Assembly (NCBI GenBank): GCA_965202585.1
Contig: OZ241830.1
Location: 40,300,001-40,364,000, forward strand
Direction of reading: 5' to 3'
Source of the DNA: Thalia democratica
Lineage: Eukaryota
Length of the DNA stretch: 64,000 nucleotides
The position numbers and the translations under genes were made by a program. Shown piece after piece: positions 38,995 through 58,916 of the stretch; position 1 is the first letter of the stretch; each line of letters starts with the position of its first letter. The notes beneath the pieces are model-generated. The model was not told the origin of the DNA and ran no database searches. It saw only the letters and a list, made by a program, of their open reading frames with translations.

Positions 38995-40171
38995 CAAATA
39001 TTTTACCTAATTTTAAAATTATTTATTTTTATACCTGATTTTATTACTTCACAAAAGCGAACACAATTAATTTATAAACCATTTCAAATTGTTACAAATA
39101 ATAACTTTTAAATTTATGTTATTATAATATACATGAACTCATAAAAAGATAAAGTAATAGTTTTTTGTGTTAAGCATTAAATTTATTGCTTGTGTTTATA
39201 TATTTTTCATGAACAAAATACGTTTTAAACTAAAGTTTTAAAGATTGCAGTTTAGTTTATGCGATACATTATTACACAATTTTGATTATTTCTAAATAGG
39301 GTTATACCCAAAAACAAAAGCACTTTTTGTGTATTTAGAATATTTACAATACTGTTTTGTAACTTTAAACAAACATTTACAGTTTTTTTTCAAACCTTTA
39401 ACAAATATGTAAAGCGAGTGTCAATCATTTTTCATTAATTTCAAAACTTTTAAAGTTTTAATTAATCTCTATTAAAATGTCTTAAAATTTTAGTGTTCCG
39501 CAGTACATAAATTATAATATAATTCTATTCTAGTCATTAAATTAAAGTTGAGATTAAAGTTAACTGTTAAATAAAAAATATGTTTAAATTGTTTTGTAGC
39601 TAATTCAAAATTTGTATAACTAAAAAAAAATGTTTTGTTAATCAACAAATATCAATTTTTTAAGCATTTGTATCTAAACTTCAATACAAAGTTTTTTACA
39701 AAATTAACTAAAGTAGCTATTTTCATTAGAATCAAAAGATTAATTTTACATTTAGTGTTCTTGAAGTAATTATGAAGAAGTTTGTTAAGTATTTAATAAT
39801 CGCTAACTGTAAAAAAATATTTAATGTGGTTTTTGGCATTAAGTGAATGTATATATTTAAAATATTAGATATAACATAATACAGCGATAAGTTCTAAAGT
39901 TACAAATAAGCAAATTTCGTTGGAAAGTCAAAACTATCATTTTATTTGTAAAACATAAAGTTAACAAACTTATCTTTGTTATGACTACTAAACCCGTTCA
40001 AATAGGAAGTACAGTTAACGTTTAGGGAATTCACCAGCAAACAAAACATTTTCACACATTGGAGATTAACCTAAATTAATATCTCTCGTATATATTAAGC
40101 TGAGTTGAGCTATTTTTTGTCACTTCATAGAAGCTTCATAGAAGCAGTTCACTCGAAAACAAGTTACTAAT

Positions 40172-41051
40172 ATGGACAAGTTAGTTGTTTAATGATTTTG
40201 TAGTTAATACAGTTAAACTTGCTAAAGCTAATAGTATTGGACGAAAAAGTTAAAATAGCTGTATAATCATCATAAAATTAAAGTTTTATAAGTTGATAGT
40301 TTAGCTTCATTATACTATACTGAAGTTTTTTATTTTTTGCAAATACTGTTAATGTATTTAAAAATCAGTATTTTTTGTAGGCAAAGCCAGTCTGACGCCA
40401 ATAACCATGCTAATCAATGTAACCCGAACAATTCAAAGTAAGTAGAATTTATTTTGTTACTAAAATGATATCTATATTTATTATCATATTAAGAATGTAT
40501 GTTTTTTACTCTGGTCTAACTTTACTCTACTAACAAAAAATAAGTTTATAAAGACATTTTTTATGTGTAAAAAAATGGAAAAATGTGCTTTTGTGCTAGG
40601 AATTACAGACATGATAAAACTAATTATAAACTTTTTGAAATATTTCATTCGCACGACACAAACCTAATGTAGTTTATAAGTTAATTTATTTTAAATACAA
40701 TATTACACTATTTATACTTTTCACAGTTATCAGAACTACCAAAGCAACTATGGTGGGTCTGGTACCAGATCTGATTTGAACAATCACTCGAATCAGATGA
40801 ATCCTAACAACTCAAAGTTAGTTTACATTATTTTTTCGGAAACAACTTAAAATCTGTAAATATTTTAATAAACATACATAGTTGTTTTTTGCTATAAACC
40901 ATACAGTATCAAATCTATGAGATTCTGTTGTGAAAAAAATAGTTAAGTTTTAGTAAAATGTATTAAGTTGTGTATCAGTTTTTTTAAAAAGTATATATGA
41001 TCTTTCTGAATAGCATTAAAATATTTTCACAGCTACCAAGGAAAGAAGTAG
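40172..41051 (+). CDS. Asn/Gln-rich two-repeat protein copy A5 (57 aa, intact, most divergent)
   Basis: Exons 40172-40179, 40381-40437, 40727-40816, 41033-41051: MDKQSQSDANNHANQCNPNNSNYQNYQSNYGGSGTRSDLNNHSNQMNPNNSNYQGKK*. Confidence 0.88.
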
Positions 41052-43847
41052 GTATAAAAAGAAGCAAACTTTATTGTCTTTACTTTATTTTGACAATAAA
41101 CTATAATAATATCAGAATTGTTTATTTTTTATATATAAAACTAGTAATTTTTAGTTTTTTTGTTTATTATTTTTATGTTTATATTCTTAATAAACAAATA
41201 ATGATAAAGTCAAAATAATCTTTGAGGCATTTATAGGTCAATCATACAGTAAACGTAAAATAAACAAATAACGTAAAAGTGTGTGTGCATTAAATAAAGT
41301 GCTCTTGAAACTGTTCGGTTATTTTTAGTGTTTCTAAAACAAACCTAAACATTGAATCACCACATCTCAGATTTTTATAATTCCATTGCATGCTTCAAAG
41401 ATCTTTTGAATAGATAGATTATTTTTTATAATTTTGCATCGACTTTTTAATACTAACTAAGTACAACAGTATTTTTTCGTTACTTCTTTACTAATGTTTT
41501 AAAGTAAAATGTTGAAACTGTTGAAAGTTAGAAAAAAGCTGTTTTACTAATCTTAACTAAAAAAAATAATATAAACTATCAAAATTATGGTAATTGTTTA
41601 ATAAATTATTATTAAATAAATATCTTTATAATTAAATACTTAACTTGCTATTTCTAGTTAGTAATAAAATTTATTTTCTCAGCTTTTTCTATCCATCTTA
41701 CTGGCTTTATTAAAAAAAAATAATCATTTAGTAATAAATTAATTTATAAATCTACTGGTAAGATTTTTTTTTTACTTAAAATAGGAAGATGTTTTCCATA
41801 TAAAAATGTTTTGTAATTTAGCAGTTTTGATTACTAACAAATATTTAAATCAACAGATATTAATTGTTTTAAAGCACCTTTTAACAAATCTAAGTAAATA
41901 AAGTTAGTAAAAGTTTAAAAGGTAAACATGAATAACTTTTTGAAATAACTTTTTTGTATTAGTTATAATTCGTACCAAATTCGACATTCTATACAAACAA
42001 TGATCACAAGTATACGTCAGTATGTACTTTATAAGTTTTACCCAGTTAATTTTTCAAGGCAATATTATTATTTGTTGAACTACAAAAAAAAAAGTGCTCA
42101 AAATAATCGGTCTTAGGACCTGGTGCACGGACAAACTATTTGGTTATCGAGTCGCACACCATTTGGATACAGTTTTACGTCTTGTCCAGACAATATATAA
42201 TTTAAGATTTCATAGTACTTTAAAAACTAAAAAGATTACAACAAATATGCAAGGACTGCTTTAGTAAGCACGTTTTTGAAATACACATTACCTTTTATTC
42301 AAGTAATGTATCATATATTTTTGAATTAATTTCTTAATAGCTTTTAGATAATTTTCCAACATGAACTAAAATTAACAAAGTTATTTTGTTTTTGATTTAT
42401 TTTTTAAGTTTTTATTAACCCTTAATTTTTTGACTTAAGTTATACTGTTATAGTCTTATGCATTTTAAAAATAAAAATAAAATCTTAAGCTAATTTTAAC
42501 CGAATTTCTTAATTTTCTAAAAGCTACCGACAAATAAAACTGAAAAACATTAAACTTTAATCTTATCGTTTAATATTTAAAAAAAAATCAAAATGTAACT
42601 TTTAAATATAAATTTAACTTTTGTTTAAAAGCGTTTAAAGCTTTTTAAACTTAAAATACATTTATTTTACAATCATAAAAATACTCGATCAAAACTTTAA
42701 AACTCTTTAAAAAATTATGTGTTTAAAAGGCAAATTGCATTCTACAATATATTTAAAAATATATAACTTTACTTCTATAGAACTTTTGGATATTTTTAAA
42801 GTTATATAACGACGAATACTTGGTTAGTTTAAGTACAACTATTTTAATTGATACCTTATATTAAAATATTTAAAATTATACTTCTCATTACTTATAATTT
42901 TTAATATAATAAAACCTACGGTAGTTGTTATTATAAAGACTAGTTTAACCAAAAATTTCTTTGTTTTTAATTAAGCTTGTTTCTCATACTATAATCAAGC
43001 ATAGCAGACTTATAAGCCTTAACAACGAATACTAAAATATAGTTTAAAGTAGCAAATAACTTGCTAAAATTAGTTTCGTGCAGTTCTAATGTTTAAAACA
43101 CAAAAAAAAATGCTTGTTTAAAAAATATTTTTTTACGATATTGCCCAAACTGATTACTGACCACATACATAAGTTTTTTAATAAAAACTTTTAACATTAT
43201 AGTACTTAAAAATCAAGGCTTTTTTTTTACCAGTTTAGTTATATTTATAAACTCAGCTTTAAAATTTTAACTTGTTTTTCTTTGAAATATAGTAAACATG
43301 TATAAAGTTTACTTTCAAATGCTTTACACATTTTAACACCAATATTCTATGTTAAATACTTAAATATTCAGTTCATCATTGTGTAATTTGGAATTAAGTG
43401 TTACTAAATTCAACTGAAAAACTCTTAAAATTTTTTTTTTTGTTTTGTTCACCTAGAAAAACCGTTTTTAGTATCAGCTTACACTTTATTGCTACAATAA
43501 TTTATTTTTTTTTATTTTACTTACGGATAATTTTAAGTTTATGTTTATTAGTTTTCAAGCTTAAACTTATATTTTAAACTTATAAAGCATTAAAAAAGCT
43601 ATCTTCCTTTAAAACCTACGTACCTACCAAGGTTGCTTCTAAGAATTTTATTTTAAGCTGCGATTTAAGCCGTAAATACGTAAGAAGCTCGCGTGACCTT
43701 GTTTTAATAGAAACTTTCTTGCAAAACGCCCGCGGGAAAAACGAATATAAACGTATATAGTTAATTCTTCGTTCTAAATTCATTACAACTTTTTGTTGCT
43801 GCAGCTATCACTTTTTTTTTGTTTTTTGCTTCAAATTAAATTTTGGT

Positions 43848-46800
43848 ATGTTAAAAGTTTTGTTTAATTCAAAGCTAAGTTTTTTGTTATGTTTTCTGCT
43901 CGTGGCAAAATCTAATTCGTTTGAAGGAGATATTGATTTTGATGGTTTTGATTTTGATGAAGGCTTTGATTTTATAAATGACGATTTGTTTGCGAACTTA
44001 GGCGATACGTGGAATGACAAGGGAAATGATAATATTCTCGATATGTTTGGTGATGCTGATTGGATGGGTTTACTTAACATCGAAGATAACGATTTAGCAC
44101 CTATGCTGGGCCATGATGACGACCATCACCACGGAGACAGTTATAATTTCCACGGTGACCACGGTCATGAAAGTTATGGTGACGAAGACCATGACGACGA
44201 AGATCATGACGACGAAGATCATGACGACGAAGACCATGACGACAAAGATCATGACGACAAAGATCATGACGACGATGATCATGACGACGGTGATCATGAC
44301 GACGAAGATTATGACAACGATGATCATGACGACGAAGATCATGACGACGAAGATCATGACGACGAAGATCATGACGACGAAGATTATGACAACGATGACT
44401 ATGACAACGATGATCATGAAAACGAAGATCATGACGACGAAGATCATGACGACGATGATCATGACGACGATGATCATGACGAATATGATCTTGACAACGA
44501 TGATAACTTTGATGAAAGTTCTTTTGATTTTAAAAAGTTTTTTGAGGACATCCAAGAAACTTTTAAAGATAAGGAAGAACTCGAAAAGATTTTGAGTGCT
44601 GCCGGCTTACTGGAGAGATATGAAGAATACAGACCGAAACCTAAGCCAACAAGAAGACCTAATATGTTTTCAAACTTGTTTCGCGGCTTTTCTAATAGAA
44701 ATAAACAAATAGTTATCAATCGTGAGTTTCGATTTATTACAATACTCGTTCAGATTTGTTTATATTAAAAAGAAAGAAACATGGTCTCTAAATTAGTTTG
44801 TCAAAGTTTCTTTTACTTAAAATAATATTAGTTAAAATAACAAAACAATGATTTATATAGTTTTATAAGTGTATTATAAGTACTAAAAGTAAAAGCAAAC
44901 AAGAAAAATAAATATCGGAACTAACTAAATAACAAAATAAATTTTTTATCAAAAAATGCTTAATTTTTTGAACTTTAGCAGCACTATGTAAAACAACTGT
45001 CTCCTTTTTTTTTTGTAAGTTTTCATAGTTATACCTAGCTTTTATAATGTTTTTGTTTACGATGTACAACGTTTTTATTTTAAAAAATAGATTAACTTTC
45101 TATTTGACTTTTCATTCAGGTTGTGTTGACCGGTGGGTTTGTTTCTTCGCAGTTTGTACATCTCCGTGGGCGATTGAAAACTGCAAGAAAACATGTAGAT
45201 TGTGCGATAAAGGTTAGACTAAAGCTTGCGTTAGTTTGCACATTAACAAACTACATGACTAACAACTACTTGCAACTGTTATAGTAAAAACAGATTCTGA
45301 GAGAGTTTAAGTTCAGTAGCTTTCCGTTTAATATCGCATGTGTAAAAAAGAGTGCAAGTTGTACTAGTGTTAAAAGGTTCGAATATTCATGGTACGTCCA
45401 AATCTAGACTTTGAATACTGAGTCTAGTTGTTTCTAAAGAGCGAAATTACGCAAATAATTTACGTTTGTGTTTCAAAATATATTTTAGTAAAATTTATTT
45501 AAAAATAATTTTAATTTGTACGTTTAGTTCTTGTTTAATAAACAACTATTAAATGCTTTGCACGTAACATAAATCATAGATTAAAAAAAAAATTGTAGAA
45601 AATACAATTATTTTTGCTAAAAATTTAAGTATTTTTAAACTTATCAAATTAAAAGGTTCTACTACTAATACTTAATATTAGCTTACGCATGGTTATCTAT
45701 TTTTTAACAGTTTTAGTCTTAGCTTTTTTTAAAGTAAAACTGGCAAAAATTATTCAAATTAAATTCTCATAAATGTTTTTTCAAACCCTTTTTAATACAA
45801 AAAACGATCACAAACTTTTTCGGTGAAAAATTGAATGATGCTATTGATAAAAAACTATAATTTACTGCACTTAAATTTCAATCGTTTCAAAATAAGTATA
45901 AAAACAAACCTTTAAACTTTGTGTGACATATTTTTAGGTCGATTATCAAAACTGCTAATTAAAAAAAAAGCTATCATGTATTCTTCTTTAAAGTAAATTT
46001 ATGTTTTATAAGGCATTAACCTTACTGACTGTTAAAAGAAAGTTTGTTTAAACCTTTAAACCAGGGTCTCCTGAAGTTAGCCATAAGCTAAGGGCAATCA
46101 GGCCATAATTTGAAACTTACACTAGATATTCTGAAGCTGATGATGAATAGAGAAAAAAAGTTTTAAGCGTTTTTGATGGTAATTTGTTAGAAATCTTGTT
46201 GGAGGGGGCCATTGCGTTTTAATTTTTTTAAACGGAGCCTTATGAAAATAAATGTTGGAAAATCTTTTAAACTGATAAACACTGACGTTTTACGCGACAG
46301 AAGAGAAGAAAGAGGATGAAAAGTCGGAGGGATGGAGTGAGTGGAAGGAGGGAAGGTGCAGCGTGACGTGCGGGTTCGGGGTGAGGAGGGACACCCGCCG
46401 TTGTCGTGGTGACGAGCTTAAGTGCGCGGGTGCTGACGTCAGAAACGTGGAGTGCGAACTTGCCGAATGCAAAGGTGGGATTAATAATGTATATTTGAAA
46501 TATATGTGAAAAAACTAATTTGAAATATATTCACTACAGACTGCAAAGATTTAATCGACCGATGCGATCTGATTCAGTGCGATTCGACGTTTCCAGTTAT
46601 GGTGAAAGCTGTGAAGCAAAAGTGCAGAAAACACTGCGGACTTTGCGGCACAAACAAACCAATCGAAAAGCCTAAAACAGTCGCCAATCAAACTTCTGGT
46701 ACAGGTTGGACTGCGTTTTCTTAGAAAAACAATTATTTTTAAAACCAATTTAACAATTTAGTTTGTGAATGAATTATCTGTTTCATTTCTTTTTCTCTTC

Positions 46801-47607
46801 GGAGTTTAATCATAACAAGTACCTTGGGAAATGTGACTTAGAAAAATTAATGTAAACTGTTATGCTTTTAAAAAAATATTTACGTTGACTTTTAAATTAA
46901 GATCATTTTAGTTATTAATTTAAAGTAAAACTAAAACTTTTATTTAAATAACTAACTTTTTTTCTTTGCAGTAATATTAATTTTTAGTTCATGAAAAGTT
47001 TTTACAACAGTAAATACTTTTTTATAAAACAAATATTCAAGTTTAGCTACTTAGTTGTGTTGTTTACATCTCATAAACATTACGTGAAGGTTGGAGTAGG
47101 TGGAAAGGTACAAAGTGCAGCAATGATTGTGGTAAAGGGAAAAGAATATTGTGGAGAAAATGCCTGGACAAAAGTGATGAGAAATGTGTGGGACCAGCGG
47201 ATAAATTGGTCGAATGTACCGGTGATCAATGTGGTAAGTGTTTTCCAACTTTTCTTTTGTATCTGCTTGTTATTAAACATTACATGTTTCAGTCAGAACT
47301 TCATTATAGTTTTTAAAGTCACGAAACTGTTTAAAATAAACGGGTACAATGGTTTTTTTAACATTCAGAAAAATACGAACATAAGAAGATTAATGACATG
47401 AAAACATTGCTAAGCGACACTTTTTTTTAAACAGACGCAGATGAGTGGGGTGATTGGGTGTCGGGGGAGTGCAGTGTGTCTTGCGGGAGGGGAGAAGTGA
47501 AGGAGGAGAGATCTTGCACGTCGGAAGGGTGCAGCAAGAAGGAGAGTCGAGTTGTTGCGTGTCTGAAGCCGGCTTGCCCGAGAAGATTTTTCAGTTTGTT
47601 TGGTTGA
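43848..47607 (+). CDS. Secreted protein: signal peptide, Asp/His-rich repeats, ShKT, TSP1, ShKT, TSP1, TSP1 (~538-540 aa)
   Basis: Exons 43848-44721; 45120-45212 (CVDRWVCFFAVCTSPWAIENCKKTCRLC); 46301-46474 (WSEW..CSVTCG..RRC); 46540-46698 or 46704 (CKDLIDRC..C..CRKHCGLC); 47090-47233 (WSRW..CSNDCG; weak acceptor); 47435-47607 (WGDW..CSVSCG). All introns are phase 1 and the frame is continuous to TGA. Confidence 0.85.
44181..44480 (+). repeat. Coding 15-bp tandem repeat x20 (consensus DEDHD)
   Basis: GACGAAGATCATGAC-type units within exon 1 of the ShKT/TSP1 gene. Confidence 0.95.
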
Positions 47608-48785
47608 AAAAAAAAAGACAAACTGCATAAAATTAGTTGTATAAATTTTCAAACTTTTGAATACAGTTAAAGAAATAAAATCTTTTTTAACATATAAATT
47701 GCATCGTTTGTTATTTTTGCATCTACCCTCTGAATTATACTGAAGAAAAAAGTTTATAATTTAAGTTTTTAACATACATACTAACATGCTGCTTTTATAA
47801 ATTGTACTACTTCAGTGTTTAAGATTATCAAAAAAAATATTTAAACTTTTACGTAATTATAAGTTTTTAATTATCTGATTTTCGATTATATTAGTGTAAA
47901 TTAATAAACTTATAAAAAAAGCAGAACTAAAGACAAACAAATTTTATACAAATAAAATTAAAATTCATAAGGCAAAGCGTATAAAACTACTGTACAAATC
48001 TCTTAAAACTATTTTCAAAAATTTATGATATTTTTGTAGCAAAGCGATGTATCTGCAATTAATCTAATTATATGATATATCATACAAAAAATAAAAATAT
48101 ATATATAGTGAAAACATGATAGGACAATCAGCCAGCATTTATTTGTTATACTATCGCTAATAAAGCTCATAAGTACAATTTTGTATATAACTCGTAAAAA
48201 AAGTTGCATAGTTGTTTCCATAAAAGCTAAAACATTGTATCAAAGTTTGCAAAATCAATCAAAAAATTTCAGATTTTACTATAAATATAAAATAAGTTTC
48301 CAATATTACGGTGAATAATTAATAAAGATATGTTAAGCTATTCATAAATAACTTACATAAAAATTTAAAAGAAAAAAGTTGATGCTTGTGTGAGGCTAAA
48401 TTAAGAAAGGTTTTACAATAAGTTTTTTTTTACTACTTCATTTTTCAAAGTCTACTTTTACTCTTCAGTATCAAACCCGGAAAATGTGTAATGTAAGTTT
48501 CAACAATTTCCTGCGTAGCGAACCAGGTATACATGCTCACGGGACACAACTTGCCAACCACTGTTCTGAAACTTTACTTTTAATTAGTTTAACGTTTTAA
48601 TGTAACGTTGTAGCTAAACAAACATTTATTTTAACAAAATTTTTGCTACAAAACCTCGTCAACTACTTGAAAAAAATAAAATATCCTAAATTTGAAATGA
48701 CGAAACTTGCCTTTATGTATCTACTATTCATGTACTTTTAGTTTTGTAGCGTCAAGTAATTTTCTATTTGAATTATAATCTAAAC

Positions 48786-49712
48786 ACGAGCATAAAGTTA
48801 ATTTTATAGGCAAATTTATTAATTTTTCAAAAAAACATAAAACTTTAATGTCGATTATTTTCCTTATGTTAAAAGCTATCTAAAAAATTTAGAACGCACC
48901 TTTGTCTTTAATTAAAAAAAAAATTTGGTTTGGGGTTGGAATTATTTCATGGGGTCCCTCCAAAAATAAAGGTTTATTTTTTGTTTTTTTCATTATTATT
49001 GTTTAGAACCAATAATAATTTTTTTTTTTTAATTTTTTTTTTTTTCTCTTATTTTGCATGTTATTTAAACTCTTAAATGTTTATTTTATAAATAATGTTA
49101 ATATCTTTTACGATTTGGCCCCAAATTAAAATGTAGTATATTACACTATCATTTGCCTTGGCCATTTCCTAGATAAAAAATTGATAAAAGGAAAAAACAA
49201 ATTAATAAGAATGTGCATTACAACAAATTCTATTAAATTACTTTAATTTAATTAAGTTTGTTGTAATTCACATTCTTACTAATTTGTTTTTTCCTTTTAT
49301 CAATTTTTTATCTAGGAAATGGCCAAGGCAAATGATAGTGTAATATACATCATTTTGATTTGGGGCCAAATCGTAAAAGATATTAACATTATTTATAAAA
49401 TAAACATTTAAGAGTTTAAATAACATGCAAAATAAGAGAAAATAAAAAAAAAATAAAAATAAATATTTATTTTTGGTTCTAAACATTGATAATGAAAAAA
49501 ACCAAAAAAAAAACTTTATTTTTGGAGGGACCCCATGAAGTAATTCCAACCCCAAACCAAAAATTTTTTTTTAATTAAAGACAAAGGTGCGTTCTCTAAA
49601 ATAAAAAAAAAAATTTTAAATAGCTTTTAAGATAAGGAATATAATCGACATTAAAGTTTTATGTTTTTTGGAAAATCAATAAATTTGCCTATAAAATTAA
49701 CTTTATGCTCGT
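48786..49712. mobile_element. Foldback/Mutator-like element (927-bp near-palindrome)
   Basis: Arms of ~440-455 bp are reverse complements around a 29-bp spacer (49228-49256). Flanked by the 10-bp direct repeat TAATCTAAAC (48776-48785, 49713-49722). Confidence 0.88.
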
Positions 49713-50336
49713 TAATCTAAACCCTATAGTTTTGTATGTCAAGTTTTGATTTTAATAAAGCCACATTAGTACTCTCTTAACGATGATAAAACAATTTCTT
49801 TTATTTGGAAGTCGTAAAAACTAGTGTGTTTAAAAAAAAAACTATAAATACGTTTCAAACATTATAACTATAGTTTACATATTTGATACGCAAACGCAAC
49901 TTTAACTATTTTTTTAGTCATTTTGTTTTTATTTCAAGTAAGTAGTTGATTTAAATTCGAATATAAGTATATTTTTTGTTTGATTTTTTAGTTTTTTTTT
50001 CAACTAGCAAGCCTTTTAAGTAATAACTGTAGTAATAACTAAATACGTATCTTAATAAACTTTACTAAACAAGTAAAGTATATTTATGTAGCAAGTACAA
50101 AACTTTCTAAATACTTTATTTAACATATAAGTCCTTAGTTGTTTTATAAAGAATAAGTTTTGTACTTTTTTACACAAAATATTTATTTTGTAAGTTCATA
50201 AATATGCAAAAGCAATTAATTTACGAACTTAAATGTAATAAATTTAAGTTCTAGTTGTTTATTTGACAAGTAATTGAATTACTCAATTTTTTTTTAAACG
50301 TAAGCTCTTAATACACTACAATATATTAGTTAAAAT

Positions 50337-50755
50337 GGTTACATGATTGTTCAAATTCGGACAACTCAAATTCCGACAATTCAAATTCTTTAAAAAAAAT
50401 TTAAGTGACTATGTCTCAATAAGTAATATAAATTAAAAGAAAAAATTTAAATACATATGTAGATTTTATAAATATCTACAAGCCATTTTTTTTGCAAAAC
50501 GTTAAATACTTTTCAAGATACATTAAAATTACTAAAAATAACTAGGTTTTTTACTTTATTTAAACCATATCCTATAAAATATTTAAAGTTTTGCAAAAAT
50601 AAAAAAATGACTTTTAGATATTAATATGACCTCCATATGTATTTTTTATATTTTACAAACATACATTACTTATTTAGTAGTGGCCCTTTCAACTTTGTTT
50701 TAAGAATTTGAATTGTCGGAACTTGAATAATTCGAAATTGAATAGTCGTGCACCC
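50337..50755. mobile_element. Mutator-like MITE, copy 1
   Basis: Imperfect TIRs with repeated TTCAAATTC motifs; 9-bp TSD AGTTAAAAT (50328-50336, 50756-50764). Confidence 0.8.
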
Positions 50756-51292
50756 AGTTAAAATAACCACACGTGTTTTAAATTTAAGGCTTTATGCAAC
50801 AAGACTAAGAAAACAAAGCAGTTTATGTACTCTTAACTTAGAATAGTAAAAGTAATGTTCGTCTTTTTTTTTAGTAACTTCATCGAAAACTACTTTATGA
50901 GAACTTTTATCAAAATAAGTATGTTAACCATTTTTAATTAGTTTTATTTTCACTTTTATAAATTACTTCTATAATGTTTATTATATTTAAAATCTTTAAA
51001 GTCATTAGACTTTAACTTAAGCAGTTTAAAATAAATTTGTTTTACTGAAAACGAGTATTATTAATATTAATTGTTAACATTGTAAACAAAATTTTGTAGT
51101 TAAAATACTAATTAGAAACAGTTGTATGTTTTTATTGTTTAAAAGTCTTTACTTTTCTGTAACAAAATGTATTTTGTTATTGTTGAGTTTAATTTCTAGC
51201 ACACTAATTTGTAAATTTTGCGCTAAAGAGTGTTTATGTTTTCTTATGGTTGTTCTGTGTTGTTAGAAGTTTTAGTTAAAGTATGTTGTAAT

Positions 51293-51702
51293 GAGTGCAC
51301 GACTATTCAAATTCCGAAAATTCAAATTCTTAAAAAAAATTTAAAGGGCCACTACTAAAAAAATAGTGCATATTTGTCAAATGTATAAAATACATATGTA
51401 GGTCCTATTAATATCTACAACCCATTTTTTTCTTTTTGCAAAAAAAATAATGTTTTATGAAATATGGCTTGAATAAAATAAAAAACATAGTTGTTTTAGT
51501 AATTTTAAAATAACTTGGAAAATATTTAAGATTTTGCAAAAAAAGAAAAAAGTGACTAGTAGATGACAATAAGATCTACATATATACTTTTTTTTTTTTT
51601 TTTCAAATTCAATAACTTATTGAGATATAGTCTTTTAAATATTCTTTTAAGAATCTGAATTGTCGTAATTTGAGTTGCCCGAATTTGAATTGTCATGTAA
51701 TC
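51293..51702. mobile_element. Mutator-like MITE, copy 2 (same family, opposite orientation)
   Basis: Begins GAGTGCACGACTATTCAA, the reverse complement of the right end of copy 1; interior also homologous; TSD degenerate. Confidence 0.75.
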
Positions 51703-52056
51703 TATTTTAAATGCTTTGTTTAATAAACACTTAATCACAATTATTGCTAGAATTTTATATGTATATTTGGCAGTAGATACTAATTTGTATTTTAAGGAAA
51801 AGTAATTTCTTAACCAGGCCGGGGATTATAAATGGTGACCGGAATTATACATTGCACCTTCTGACGGACTCGGGACACCTCAGTAGTAAACCTGCTAACT
51901 CTAAATAAATCAATAGTTCCATGATGGAAAACCAACAAGGTGTACAAAACTTAAATTTTGAAGAAAAGATTAAAATGGTTAGAAAGGTTTACCTTTGATA
52001 TTGAAGACCCAAAACAACAACTTTTATATTTTGAGAACGATATGGCTGACCATGGC

Positions 52057-52980
52057 GGGTAGGTGTCAAGTTTGCACGAGGGGACTAAAATGCACGAAGA
52101 TACTTTTGCACGAGGGGACAAAAATACACGAAGACATTTTTGCATGAAGGGTCAATTTTGCAAGAGCAGACAATTTTGAACGTAGACATTTTTGCACAAG
52201 TTTTTTTTTTAACACTTTTTTTTACCAACTTAGTTTTTTTTTTTTACTTTATTTTACTATCATTGTTATTACCCTCGGTCGGTAACTTTATTTTCTTTAT
52301 CAATTATTTTATTTATTATTTTTTACTATCACTCTTTCCCCTAACCCTAAGCCTCAGTCTACTTTTTTTTTCTATAATTTTATATAGTTTTTGTTTTTTG
52401 TTTACATTCACTGTTACCCCTCTAACCCTTATCCTTGGCTTCTTCTTTTTTTTTTATCATATAGTTTTTTTCCTTTTTTTTATACTTTTTTTTCTGTTTT
52501 TTATACTCTCGTGAAAAATTGACCCTTGGTGCAAATTTGGGTAATTACCTAGGATGATATCGTACCAATATCAAACTGAAAATATATAATGTTCGATGTG
52601 TTTTTTAACCATAACTTTAGGTTAAAAATTAATATTTTGTATACACATTAATAAAATTAAACTTATTTATCATAAATTAACAAAATTTAAATATTTAATC
52701 GCTTTTATTTTGTAATATAAAGTGATGATTTCAAAATAATAATTTATATTGATTTTGTTATTGTTAAATAAAATCGACTAATTATTTTATTTAAAATAAA
52801 CAAATCATGCTTACTATGGATTTATACAGTTTGTTTAAAACAGAGTATCTTTTCTGATTATACATATTAAGTTTAAAACATTAATTTTTAGCCTAAAATT
52901 GTAGTTGAAAAAGCCACAGAATATAATATAATTTCAGCTTGTTATTGTTGCGACATCATCCTAGGTAATTACTGGCATTT
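52057..52980. mobile_element. MITE X (TIR GGGTAGGTGTCAAGTTTGCACGAGGG) with MITE Y nested in its right end
   Basis: Subterminal TTTGCACGA repeats. The right TIR CCCTTGGTGCAAATTTGG appears to resume as TGGCATTT after element Y. Confidence 0.55.
52541..52972. mobile_element. MITE Y (432 bp)
   Basis: TIRs GTAATTACCTAGGATGATATCG / CGACATCATCCTAGGTAATTAC, flanked by TGG on both sides. Confidence 0.7.
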
Positions 52981-53379
52981 TTAAAGAAGCTGAAAAATAC
53001 TGGATAATTTGTGAGTTTTTGCCAAACAAATACATGTGGGCCTATACCTTAAGCACTGACCGTAGAGATAGAAACTTTAAAAGCTTAAGGGATTTCCTAA
53101 TAGAAAAAGGTGGAGTGTTGCCAAGGGTTTTACTACCAAAAAAGCAACTACACTCCGTCAGTGGCCTGGAACTCGACATTTAAATCAGCAAGTGGTTTGC
53201 TGATTTTGAAGACCAGGAATTTATTTCTTGCACCTCATACCAAAACATTTAAAATACAAGATAACCAGTAGCCTGTCACTAGGTTTTGAATAATTTAGAA
53301 TATTTGTGATTTTAACATGTGACTTAGACATGACCAAAACAAAATATAGAGCAAGACAAGGCAGTTGTTTCAAGAAACC

Positions 53380-53750
53380 AAAACAAAACCAACAGTTGTC
53401 TTACCAAAGAAGAAATAAACTTCCAGATAAAAAGATACTTATGGACAAGTATATTCTAAAAATTCAGTTGATGTGTATTTCAAAAAAGAAAAACAAAATC
53501 AGCAGTTCTTTTACCAAAAGAAAAATAAACTGCCAGACCAAAAAGTTTTTTATGGTCAAGGACATTCTAAAACTCTTTTGACAGAATTTTCAATAAACAA
53601 AATCAGTAGTTTTCATACAAAGGAAGAAATAAACTGCCAGTTCAACAAGTCAGTTATGAGCAAAGACATTCTAAAAACTTCTTTGGCAAGAGTTTTAAGT
53701 ATCAAAATCAACAAATCTCATACCAAAGAAGTGAATAGCTAGTTCAATAG
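53380..53750 (+). repeat. Degenerate ~100-115-bp tandem repeat x4
   Basis: The AAAATCAGCAGTT..TACCAAA(G)AAGAAATAAACTGCCAG motif recurs near 53380, 53497, 53598 and 53700. Confidence 0.6.
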
Positions 53751-54459
53751 GTCAATTATGGGCAGGGACAGCCTAAGTCTAAACAAAAATACCATAGAAA
53801 CAAAAAAAAAATCAAGTAAAAACAACCAACAAAGAAGTTATGTTTTGCAACAGCAGCAAAGAAGAAAGTCAAACTTTACTCAACTTCCCATAAATCAAAT
53901 TAGTTGTCCAATCAGCAAAAACAAAGTTTAACAAAAGCAATTACACCTATAAGCATACTCAAAAAGAATAGCACAAGTCACAATATGCTTACTACTGATG
54001 AAAAAATTGTCAGACACCGCTAGGTGTCACTAGTTTGACTTTTGATTCAAAAAAGTTTGATTTCACTCTAAAACCCTCACCTGACTAAACTTCACATACT
54101 AATTTAAGTTTCTCACAAAGTAATTTGCCATCCCCTGGTTTTTATTCTAAAACTGTTAATTATTCTCCTAAAGGTGTGCATATGCAAAGCAACTTACTCA
54201 AACTTCAGCAAAATGGCCAGTTCTGGCCTGACATGAAGTTTTCAAAAACGTCATGAATTGCTAACAAAAAAGTAATCAGGTTAGCCAAATGTCTTCAGTT
54301 CCATGTTCCAATTGGTAAGCCTTCTGTCAACAGTCAATCGACAGTTTTAAAAACAATATCTTGAATTATTTTTGTCAAATTTTCTTTATGTTGCAGGAAA
54401 TATTAAAATAAAGTTCATGAAATACTCATTAGTATATAATTGGTGAATGAGAATATGTT

Positions 54460-54840: not shown

Positions 54841-55121
54841 ATGTCAGATCGTGGTAAGGGAGGCGCCGAAAGTCACCGCAAAGTCAACAACATCAAGGGT
54901 ATCGCCCAGCCCGCCATTCGCCGATTGGCTTGTCGAGGCGGTGTCAAGTCTGAAGGCTTGATTTATAAAGAAACACGTGGTGTGCTAGATAAATTCTTGG
55001 AAACCTTTGTTGTTATGCAGTCACTTACACCGAGTATGCTAAGCGGAAGACAGTCACCGCCTTGAATGTTGTATGCGCATTGGAGCGTCAAGGATGTGTA
55101 TTGTACGGATTCGGAGACTGA
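54841..55121 (+). pseudogene. H4: Histone H4 pseudogene
   Basis: [50 protein letters not shown], then a frameshift to [34 protein letters not shown]; several deletions. Confidence 0.93.
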
Positions 55122-56035
55122 GATACTCCTGGGAAAGAGATAACCAGTAAAAGCATCAGCTAAGGCTGAAAAATAGAGGAACTTCTTAAAATGAAGGATT
55201 TTTTGTTTTCGTGTTGATAACTTATTGATTTAAAAATTTTATTGAGTATTAAAAAATCTATTTTCAAAACTTTAAGTTTATTGTTTAGTAGAAAAAGTAT
55301 AAAAATCCCGCCAAAGGTATTCAGTTATAAGATCTGAGGAGTGAAAATGTAACAAAATGTCATTTTTTATTGTTGATTTCTACCACACTAATTTGGCGCT
55401 AAAGAGTATTTATGTTTTCTTATGATTGTTCTGTGTTTTGTGGGTTTTGTAAGTAAAATTGATTCTTTGAACAAGCCAGGGATTATAATTAGAAACAGTT
55501 AATTTTTTTTATTGTTTAAAAGTCTACACTTTTCAACTTACACTTTACAATGTTGATCCTATTTTATAAATAAAACTGTTGTGTTTTTAGTGTTTTAAAA
55601 AATTACTTAAAGGATAGTTTTTTTTACATGAGGTTATTAGCAGATTTTAAACTAGCCAGGATTGTAAAAAAAATCAATAACTTTTTTGTACTATCATTAT
55701 TACTATTTGTTAGTTTAAATTCTATGAGTTTGTAGTTAAAAGTATAAGTATTAATACTTTTATTTATTAATACAACAATGATTTAGCTTAGATTTTGCTT
55801 TAAAAAAGACTTAGTGATTTTAAAAACTATATTTTTTTATTACTTATCAAAACATTTTCTCGTTTGTTAAAAAGTACAAAAGTATTCAATAACTATTGTT
55901 TCAGTTAAAAGAAAATCATTAAAAAAACAGGTTATATTTTTTTGAAAAAGTAGATTAAGTTAAAAAATATTATTAACTTTTTCAAATGTTTCAAACTAAA
56001 CCATTAAACAGCAAAAATTTCATGTATTTATCAAA

Positions 56036-58916
56036 ATGTCTACAACAACTTGGTACAAAATGGATCATAAAAAAAGAGGAACATTCGTAATACTTTGTTA
56101 TAGCGTTAGTAGTTTACATTTCAATTGGTTATTTCAACTACATATAAGACTGAAACTTTTCAGTAAATAAAGTCTTAATAATTCCTTATATTTTTTTATT
56201 TGTGCTGTTTTAAAAGTATATAACAAATTTTATTGTTTTTTAACTTAACTAAAAAACTTTTTTTTAGCTTTTAGTCCCCCAATTAATTTTTTGTATAACT
56301 TAAAGTTAGCATAAAACGTTTCAGAGTCAACTTAATGAGTTAGTAACTCAAAAAATAAGTTTAACAATTTTTTATGCATTATGCAGTCTATAAAAAAAAT
56401 TTGTAAATGTTTTATCAATTTAAAATTAGAAAATTAAAACCTTTTTATTAAAGGAAACAGATGAATCTGAGAAAGACACTTTTATGTTTGATGAAGTTAA
56501 TCAATTTGAAAATCTTGCACTAAAAATGGGATTTCAACGTGAAGATATTATTTTGTTTGAAAGCTTGACTACAATCGAAACTGTAGAAGCTCTCATATAC
56601 GGTTGGTAGAACATAGGGTTGCGTAAACAACACAAAACTTTATCTTACATTATCTTTATAAAAATAAAATTACAAAAAACATTCGTTTTTATTTGAACTT
56701 AAAAATTTAACGCCATATCAAAGCTCGTTAGGTGTTAAATATGCAGGAAGGGACACTTTGCACGGGTTGAATTTTTTTTTTGATCGGTATTTTTTCTTCT
56801 TTTTTTTATATAACTTTTTATTAGTTTTTAACTATCACCGTTACTCCTTACCCTTAGTCAGTACTTTTTTTTAACCTAATTAACGTTTTTTTTTTTACTA
56901 TCATTGTTATCCGTAACCGTTCGGTAGCTTTTTTTTATTAATTTTGTTGTTGTTTTTTTTTATTTACATGCTAAAGAGTCTTTTTCCTCATGCATACTTG
57001 ACCTATCGCGATAAATAAAAATTTAATTACAGTATCAGAAGAAATAAATAGAGCTGGTGATGACCAAGACTGCCTGGTCTTGGCAATCGTGTCTCATGGT
57101 GACATGGACGGTAAAATGAAGACCAATGACGGAGGGATTTATTTTAACCAACTCTTTCAAATTTTTGGCCCAAACAGCTGTCATGTTTTAAAAGGAAAAC
57201 CAAAGATTATTTTAAAAACCGTTAGACTATTATTAATTAAAAGTTACGTTAAGGAAAATATTTAATAAACTTCTTGTACTCTTAGTTGAGCTTTGTTGGA
57301 GTTATACTATTTTTAAAATGATCTTCAAAGTTTAAAGAATTTAAAAACTTCATACTTTATAACAATATTTGTTTTGGTGTTTTTTGTCTAAAAATAAATT
57401 TATATTGTAATTTAAATGCATATGAATTTTTATTTGTAGCTTCTTAAATCTTATTTTATTAACTAAAGTTAATTTTTTGATGTATAAGGTAGACCAAAAT
57501 AGCATTAAAAATATTCTTACTTTAATTTTTAAGTATTAATGGTAAGTCAATAAACTCAGCTATTTTGTACTTTTATTATAACTGTGATCATCAACTAAAT
57601 ATTGTAAAACTTTAGACTTGTATGGGAAAAAAAGAAGACCGTCGAAATAAAATAAGCACTAAAAACATTAAAAAAAGAAACAAAGCCTTGAAAAGTAGTA
57701 CAAATAATAATAAAAGGTTGAATAAAACTTTTAATAACACAACTTTTGAAGATTTAAATACAGAAGAATATACATCTGAAAAAATATCGAGTGATTTGTT
57801 TAAGATTAAAAAACCAGTATTAGAAGACTATCTTATTTTCAATCCAACTGTTGAAGGTAAACTTTTTTTAATTAACTATGATCTAAATGAGGAACTTATA
57901 ATAACTTTTTAGCATTTTTCATACTTTCACAAATTGAGTTAAGCACAAACTATAATCTACAATAAAATAAACTAAATAGGTTTTAGTTGTGGAGGTATAA
58001 ATCAGGATGGATGTACGTACGCCACCTATGTTCTAAGCAAGTTATTTGGCATCCATGGGTTTAAAATGGACTTCCTTGAAGTTTACTTTTACATATTTTA
58101 TTTTTAGTCTTGCTAATTATACATAGCAATCTATTTTGTTTTTAAACTTTCAACACAAAAGTAAAAAGTTTGAGGTTTAGTTGTCACTTTTATCTTAACT
58201 AAAGTATTTTTTGCATTTTTTGTTCAAAAACTAAATTTGATCTTACCTCTAGATCTTTTTCAAACTCATCACTTATTAAACTGTATTTTAAATTTGTATA
58301 TATGATTATTCTTTAAATACTTAAAAAAATTAGTAGTATTTTATCAACTACTGACTATTTTTTCGTTTAAAATGTTAATGTTCACAAACAGGTATTGACC
58401 AACACAAACTATATAGTAGCAAATAACACTTACCTTCATTGTAAAAAAAAGAAGAATATGTCCTGTTTTCAAAGTAATCTAACTAAACAGCTTATTTTTA
58501 CCAAAAGAAACAAGTAAGTTAGAAATTTAAACATTTTAGCTAATAACATGATATGATAAAATTGTATTATTTTAATTAAACTAGTTAATGATAAGCACAT
58601 TTTTTACAGAAGGGAAGAAACAAACTTTGAAAACATAAGTACAAACGTAAATAAAAAGTTTCTCAATAAACTATTCCTTCGTATTGAAAACCTACAGGAT
58701 CCAAAACGTGAAACAAAAATAAGCTTTTCGGAAAAACTAAAAAACTTGGAAAAAAAGTTTTTTGTTTCCATAAAAAATAAGTCGCTATATGTTTGTTTGA
58801 AAGCTGGTTATCAAAGTCCAGAAGAACGAAATTTTCCACTAAGAAAACGAATAAAAACAAATTTTGATGAGATAGAAAATAAAATTACTTTTCATTTCAT
58901 TGGTCATCTTGATTGA
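56036..58916 (+). CDS. Divergent caspase-fold (peptidase C14-like) protein, 391 aa, 7 exons
   Basis: Exons 56036-56104, 56454-56601, 57033-57220, 57616-57856, 57980-58080, 58392-58513, 58610-58916 (1176 nt, no internal stops). Motifs YKMDHKKRGTFVIL, DCLVLAIVSHG, LKGKPKIILKTTCMG, PVLEDYLIFNPTVEG, MDFLEVLT, SNLTKQLIF. Confidence 0.85.
56743..57009. mobile_element. Truncated relative of MITE X in caspase intron 2
   Basis: Shares the TTTTACTATCATTGTTA..CGGTA and CCTTACCCTTAGTCAGTAC interior segments and a TGCATACTTGACCTA end with 52057-52540. Confidence 0.55.

Follow-up and report, generated by a model that had tools for sequence, protein, structure and literature searches.

Animal caspases are defined by their strict cleavage after aspartate. 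The basic S1 pocket that binds this aspartate is formed by R179, Q283 and R341 (caspase-1 numbering), while in metacaspases and paracaspases positions 283 and 341 are acidic and a further Asp lies six residues after 179 (PMC2064784). Here we describe a caspase-like gene in a stretch of 64,000 nucleotides of the Thalia democratica genome (contig OZ241830.1, positions 40,300,001 to 40,364,000 of the forward strand). The whole stretch is called the window, and positions are counted from its first letter. In this gene the catalytic His and Cys are retained and the residues that confer Asp specificity are replaced. The locus is best explained as a functional seven-exon gene for a prodomain-less, effector-type caspase homologue, and the residue pattern suggests that its product could well be an active cysteine protease that prefers a residue other than Asp, possibly a basic one, at P1.

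The window is strongly AT-rich, with a GC content of about 24%. The translated open pieces between 56000 and 58600 join through GT-AG introns into a single frame on the forward strand, and all introns of the gene are of the GT-AG type. The predicted product has 391 residues, consisting of a caspase domain and a C-terminal tail of about 100 residues. The exons and the linker are as follows.

56036..56104, + strand: exon 1, with the start Met and the first beta-strand (MSTTTWYKMDHKKRGTFVILCYS), effectively without a prodomain; donor GTTAGT; start position, exon length and phase identical in the paralogue L007.
56454..56601, + strand: exon 2, with the L1 loop and helix 1; Asp codon 56475-56477 aligned to caspase-1 R179 and preceded by an invariant Lys.
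57033..57220, + strand: exon 3, which encodes the p20 core; it contains S-H-G (His 57095-57097) and GKPKIILKT and closes with the Thr codon 57218-57220, at the Q283 position.
57616..57856, + strand: exon 4, with T-C-M-G containing the catalytic Cys (57619-57621), the intersubunit linker and the start of the p10-like part.
57628-57819, + strand: intersubunit linker within exon 4, 64 residues rich in Lys, Arg and Asn.
57980..58080, + strand: exon 5, with the L3 loop; codons 57991-57996 (Gly-Gly) at W340/R341.
58392..58513, + strand: exon 6, with the last helix and the dimer-interface strand (MSCFQSNLTKQLIF), ending at the donor AA/GTAAGT.
58610..58916, + strand: exon 7, a Met-less C-terminal extension of about 100 residues, with a conserved core at 58707-58862 and the stop TGA at 58914-58916.

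The paralogue on contig L007 is complete, with 389 residues, and is about 30-55% identical to the window gene exon by exon. All six introns have the same position and phase in the two genes, and these shared introns are the best support for the predicted gene model. The preliminary description of this locus had placed seven exons without a stop between 56036 and 58513. The open spliced frame holds, whereas only six exons lie in that interval; the seventh is at 58610-58916, and an in-frame TAA at 58515-58517 falls inside the consensus donor of exon 6. An acceptor 96 bases downstream opens a phase-compatible frame of 102 codons without a Met. Since the apparent TAA is part of the donor and exon 7 continues in phase, the gene runs about 400 bp past 58513.

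The arrangement of exons 6 and 7 is found in four gene copies, namely the window gene, its orthologue (contigs L011/L012) and the paralogues on L007 and L013. In the last three, a phase-2 donor directly follows the caspase C-terminus, and an intron of about 90 nucleotides leads to a Met-less frame; L007 has no in-frame stop at the exon 6 donor. The tails of the window gene and L007 match each other in tblastx with E 2e-13. The core common to these two reads NLEKKFFVS.KNKSLY.CL ... FPLR.RI in the window, with NLE..F.VS.K.KS.Y..L ... PLR.RI invariant, and its ratio of non-synonymous to synonymous substitution rates (dN/dS) is 0.27. A small in-frame insertion or deletion (indel) and a divergent 3' end of this exon are seen in the orthologue contigs. 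No Pfam family scored above noise for exon 7, and no relative was found in the Atlas (best score 0.64). The AlphaFold2 model from a five-row alignment had a predicted local distance difference test score of 50, which is too poor for a fold search. The PLR.R motif of the tail is perhaps a candidate self-processing or pseudo-substrate site. Both the C-terminal exon and the family context given below are additions to the preliminary description.

The start ATG is at 56036, and its Met stands six residues upstream of a Y-K-M-D motif, in agreement with the very short prodomain described before. An upstream prodomain exon was considered and ruled out, the Met position being conserved in L007 and the upstream frame being unconserved and closed by a stop. 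An acceptor-like AG (aaacag / caatag) is located a few to about 20 bases 5' of the start ATG in both the window gene (56008-56035) and L007 (115-123), and it may represent a spliced-leader trans-splice site, of the kind often seen in tunicates. No second copy of the caspase gene was found within the window, and Rfam gave no match on it.

The caspase identity of the product is supported by several searches. Exon 3 matches Pfam PF00656 (Peptidase_C14) with 28 bits against a cut-off of 21.4, and a profile built from 11 canonical caspases aligns residues 3-290 with 128 bits (E 4e-41). In BLAST searches against full-length caspases, residues 7-290 are covered, with a Ciona caspase-3-like protein among the best full-length matches. 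When exon 3 was compared with the PDB, all 60 matches listed, of 134, were caspases, and the nearest solved structures were effector caspases, namely an ancestral caspase-6, caspase-3/6/7 and the two insect entries 3sip and 1m72. Exons 2 and 5 alone gave no match in the PDB, and exon 6 alone gave only a marginal one. No further Pfam domain was found, and neither were death or Ig domains.

As judged from sequence profiles, the caspase fold and the order of the p20 and p10 elements are present together with the catalytic His and Cys, and the basic S1 triad R179/Q283/R341 and the QACXG pentapeptide are absent. The gene does not classify as a paracaspase or metacaspase (C14B), having T at 283 and G at 341, no additional Pfam domains, and caspases as its nearest sequences. 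Nor does it classify as a cFLIP-like pseudocaspase, with its dyad intact and no prodomain.

The His of SHG is encoded by CAT at 57095-57097 and the Cys by TGT at 57619-57621; both positions are as reported earlier, and both residues are conserved in orthologues and paralogues. The replacements of QACRG by TTCMG and of SWR by CGG, and the lack of an Arg in the R179 loop, are likewise read from the sequence as described. The pocket positions compare as follows.

Q283: T in the window gene, H in L007.
A284: T in the window gene, S in L007.
R286: M in the window gene, M in L007.
W340: G in the window gene, V in L007.
R341: G in the window gene (A in one related species), V in L007.
Trp of the GSW motif after W340/R341: T in the window gene, where the motif reads GCT.

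The pentapeptide T-T-C-M-G, the first T of which is the last codon of exon 3, is found in the window gene and two relatives, and L007 has HSCMG. The L3 motif is GFSCGGINQDG, with S339/W340/R341 replaced by C/G/G; orthologues have FSCGG or FSCGA, and the paralogue L007 has FAHVV. Exon 2 begins with ETDESEKDTF, which contains no Arg. The Asp encoded at 56475-56477 falls on R179 in both the MAFFT alignment and the alignment to the canonical-caspase profile, and the Lys-Asp pair keeps its distance from helix 1 in every paralogue group with an exon 2 to compare, five in all (the window gene, L005, L007, L018 and L019). An acidic residue at +6 from 179, which is also found in canonical caspases, is present and anchors the register, so that the Asp is likely to occupy the R179 position. 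None of the alignments places an Arg at 179. The triad R179/Q283/R341 is thus read as D (or deleted)/T/G in the window gene and D/H/V in L007. We also considered whether an exon lying between exons 1 and 2 had been missed, one that would bring back the R.G motif, and ruled this out; the RG-to-GF stretch is 37 residues long, exactly the length found in the nearest canonical caspase (P0066), and L007 and L005 have the junction in common with the window gene.

It was considered whether the protease might still be directed to acidic residues (Asp/Glu), binding P1 via other residues, for example the invariant Lys beside the Asp at 178/179 or basic residues of neighbouring loops. The presence of this Lys in 5/5 paralogue groups and the uncertainty of the loop alignment speak for such binding, but the joint loss of both arginines and the Gln is hard to square with it, no copy has an Arg or Lys at or next to 341, and the residue preceding R179 in caspases is not known to line S1. 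We regard this explanation as improbable.

Two further observations concern the active-site loops. The L3 substrate loop (57991-58011) differs between the window gene (GGINQDG) and the close relatives on L003 and L004 (GGINEDG and GAIDDSG), with identical flanking residues; this could reflect diversifying or relaxed selection on a specificity loop. In another deuterostome, the sea cucumber Apostichopus japonicus, a 'caspase-8-like' protein (P0035 / P0065, NCBI XP_071853473) has F-F-F-V-T-C-L-G-G against F-I-Q-A-C-R-G and keeps Arg at 179 and 341, which is an independent loss of Q283.

When protein collections were searched, exon-sized open reading frame (ORF) fragments turned up on contigs of marine metagenomes, including several from Tara Oceans assemblies. 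Such contigs align to the window through the introns with 72-92% DNA identity, which indicates that they come from related species. In the orthologue contigs, the identity of exon 3 is 94% and 88%, against 89% and 68-76% for the flanking introns (68-90% overall), and exons 4-7 are about as conserved as their own introns at the DNA level. Apart from the small one in exon 7, the indels lie in introns, and the caspase-domain exons 3-6 are free of them; no exon contains a stop, and the splice sites are kept. L003 and L004 have the same TCMG, with the Thr codon changed synonymously, and the linker contains no indels.

The dN/dS values were determined using the Nei-Gojobori method. Relative to the window gene they are about 0.3 for exons 3 and 4, while the value for exon 4 between L003 and L004 is 0.70; exon 5 gives 0.06-0.27, and exon 6 gives 0.20 against L011. 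For exons 3-6 pooled, dN/dS is 0.24, with 21 synonymous and 21 non-synonymous changes (binomial P=7e-6), and for more distant relatives the pooled value is 0.35 (P=5e-5). Among the exonic single-nucleotide polymorphisms listed for three genomic runs, a codon-by-codon reading gives about 7 synonymous against 4 non-synonymous changes. The predicted gene is under purifying selection.

These results bear on the possibility that the locus is a decaying duplicate or a mis-modelled gene with a fortuitous open frame. Spliced fragments are absent from protein collections and the sequencing runs are genomic, the match to solved caspases is very weak outside exon 3, and a histone H4 pseudogene is located 1 kb upstream, all of which would fit such an origin. 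However, two independent comparisons give dN/dS significantly below 1, at least three species and several paralogues share the frame, the splice sites and the intron phases, and the whole domain reaches 128 bits against the caspase profile. This explanation is largely refuted and very improbable, and the earlier view that the gene is not a pseudogene stands, with dN/dS of 0.24-0.35 (P below 1e-4), no stops, and six intron positions and phases in common with L007.

The gene has many relatives. A search with an exon-3 profile returned 17 further distinct sequences, in which orthologues and paralogues are mixed. All 17 end with KPK-x-x-x-x-[T/S/H/F/Y/L/M] directly before the conserved intron, where canonical caspases end with ...I-Q. 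With the window gene included, [S/A]-H-G is kept in 18/18 exon-3 sequences and Gln at 283 is found in 0/18. The absence of Asp-specificity residues noted for this gene is borne out and extends to a whole family. Cys-Met-Gly is kept by the window gene in three species and also by the L007 paralogue, so that the conservation of the Cys covers two paralogue groups. In a tree of the short exon 3, the family sequences are grouped on one side of a branch with support 87/99, plus one long-branch outsider. Canonical QACRG caspases with the same intron position (P0012, P0077 and P0066) occur in the same kind of samples. A scan of JGI metagenomes with the exon-3 profile returned only three unrelated loci with 37-38% GC and did not find the family, which is so far known from no source other than this genome and metagenomes of marine plankton. 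The window gene is best explained as a member of a lineage-specific, multi-member family of caspase-like genes.

From the pattern of kept and replaced residues we infer catalysis and the P1 preference. The family retains His-Gly and Cys of the dyad along with the core of the caspase domain and its dimer strand, and its substrate groove is rebuilt. The pocket positions carry an invariant Asp at R179, a small or variable residue at 283 (T/S/H and others) and Gly/Ala/Val at 340/341, and Met stands in place of the Arg of QACRG. In the proposed mechanism, two positive charges would thereby be exchanged for one negative charge in a deeper pocket, which would no longer accept Asp and may prefer a basic residue (Lys/Arg), or at the least one that is not acidic, at P1. 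The linker, in which 18/64 and 16/64 residues are Lys or Arg in the two full-length paralogues, would be a candidate self-processing or pseudo-substrate site. An active protease with a non-Asp, possibly basic, P1 preference is ranked first because the dyad is invariant, an acid is invariant at one pocket position, and the residues at the other two are small. As a more tentative extension, a chordate clade of C14A may have switched from Asp to basic P1 through the charge reversal at R179 and the loss of the R341 and Q283 side chains, by a route unlike that of meta- and paracaspases, with diversification of the S1-S4 loops among the paralogues and self-processing in the Lys/Arg-rich linker.

Several observations weigh against a re-specified protease. 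Large protein collections returned no full-length or spliced copy of the family, and the sequencing runs found are genomic, covering the introns and containing no splice joints. BLAST prefers a pair of compensating 8-residue gaps, which simply deletes R179. Stretches rich in Lys are common in a genome of 24% GC, so that the basic linker is weak evidence. The L3 loop is altered even between close species. To our knowledge, such an arrangement of the pocket is used by no known enzyme. The solution is without precedent because meta- and paracaspases use other positions (PMC2064784). In addition, the residues at 283 (T/S/H/F/Y/L/M) and 341 (G/A/V) vary among the paralogues, which could result from relaxed constraint rather than from a tuned pocket. 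In mouse caspase-12 the dyad is retained, R341K is present, and the protein is considered a pseudocaspase or modulator (PMC11121540).

The last two points also favour a different explanation, in which the protein is a pseudo-caspase or regulator with a caspase-like fold and dimer and without productive substrate binding. It would heterodimerise with the canonical caspases of the same animal, or act as a decoy for them, like cFLIP-L with caspase-8 or as proposed for caspase-12 with caspase-1, and the C-terminal tail and the basic linker would function in localisation or in the binding of partners. A pseudocaspase that retains the dyad has a precedent in caspase-12 (PMC11121540). All three P1-binding residues are lost together with the S2/S4 tryptophans (W340, and GSW reading GCT), the dimer-interface strand and the core are well conserved, and the similar canonical caspases in the same metagenomes (P0066, P0012, P0077) are possible partners. 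On the other hand, the His-Gly is kept in 18/18 sequences and the Cys in every copy with known exon 4, in proteins that diverge by about 40%; catalytic residues are lost in known pseudocaspases such as cFLIP (PMC11121540); and the invariant Lys-Asp at R179 suggests a selected pocket residue rather than decay. A regulator of this kind is possible, though somewhat doubtful, and an active protease with altered P1 preference is the reading that we prefer.

Several other features were noted in the window. About 1 kb upstream of the caspase gene, a 74-codon ORF at 54841-55065 (+) matches histone H4 residues ~10-70 with E 4e-16. The copy is decayed, with part of the N-terminal tail missing and the H4 frame lost after about residue 60, and is probably a pseudogene, whether processed or degenerate. 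A high-copy repeat lies within intron 2 of the caspase gene, at 56663-56983. In three genomic runs the summed depth of the contigs climbs over this segment from about 100 to 39,000-54,000, and alternative joints are numerous around 56776-56889. The pattern points to a short interspersed element, or one like a miniature inverted-repeat transposable element, in very many copies. A 110-bp tandem repeat with 2.1 copies and 77% match is located at 53368-53602 (+), and its translation gives repeated ORFs (53306-53931) rich in Lys, Asn and Gln, with no Pfam match. An ORF at 43848-44768 (+) begins like a signal peptide and contains a long tract of Asp/His pentapeptides (repeats of DHDDE).

In the literature, we found no description of caspases that keep the dyad and lack the whole S1 triad, of thaliacean caspases, or of this set of motifs. 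If the family is indeed re-specified, it would be the first natural example of caspases retargeted to another P1; alternatively, its members would be pseudo-caspase regulators with an intact dyad, forming a large new set. Both outcomes are relevant to the evolution of protease specificity and to cell-death and immune proteolysis in the closest invertebrate relatives of vertebrates, and the family would offer a natural template for engineering non-Asp caspases.

Among known systems, the bivalve caspases with variant pentapeptides (QSCRG, QTCRA) are similar in being lineage-specific expansions with non-canonical active-site motifs; however, the variants quoted there keep the Gln, and most also the Arg, and the part of that account considered here reports no loss of the whole S1 triad, whereas the present family lacks the Gln in every member (PMC7836458). 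Like cFLIP-L and caspase-12, the window gene is a caspase paralogue whose specificity pocket is damaged and whose product may work through heterodimers. It differs from cFLIP, which has lost the catalytic residues and carries DEDs, in that its family keeps the dyad and has no prodomain, and from caspase-12, which has one pocket residue changed and carries a CARD, in that all three pocket residues are changed, the prodomain is missing and the dyad is invariant across a large family. With MALT1, the metacaspases (C14B) and gingipain R it shares the clan CD fold, the His/Cys dyad and a predicted acid in the S1 region, the source of the Arg/Lys specificity of those enzymes (PMC2064784). Their Asp/Glu residues are at 283, 341 and six residues after 179, with Leu at 179, whereas the acid of the window gene is predicted at 179 itself, with small neutral residues at 283 and 341. 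The effector caspases (caspase-3/-6/-7 and DrICE; MEROPS C14A) share with it the order of the p20 and p10 elements, the His of SHG, the Cys four residues after the KPK strand, the short N-terminus, the C-terminal dimer strand (CFQSNLTKQLIF against CFxSxLTKxLYF) and the intron directly before the Cys motif. Unlike these enzymes, the window gene has R179, Q283, R286, W340, R341 and the Trp of GSW all replaced, a linker of about 64 residues that is rich in Lys and Arg rather than provided with an Asp site, and an extra C-terminal exon of about 100 residues.

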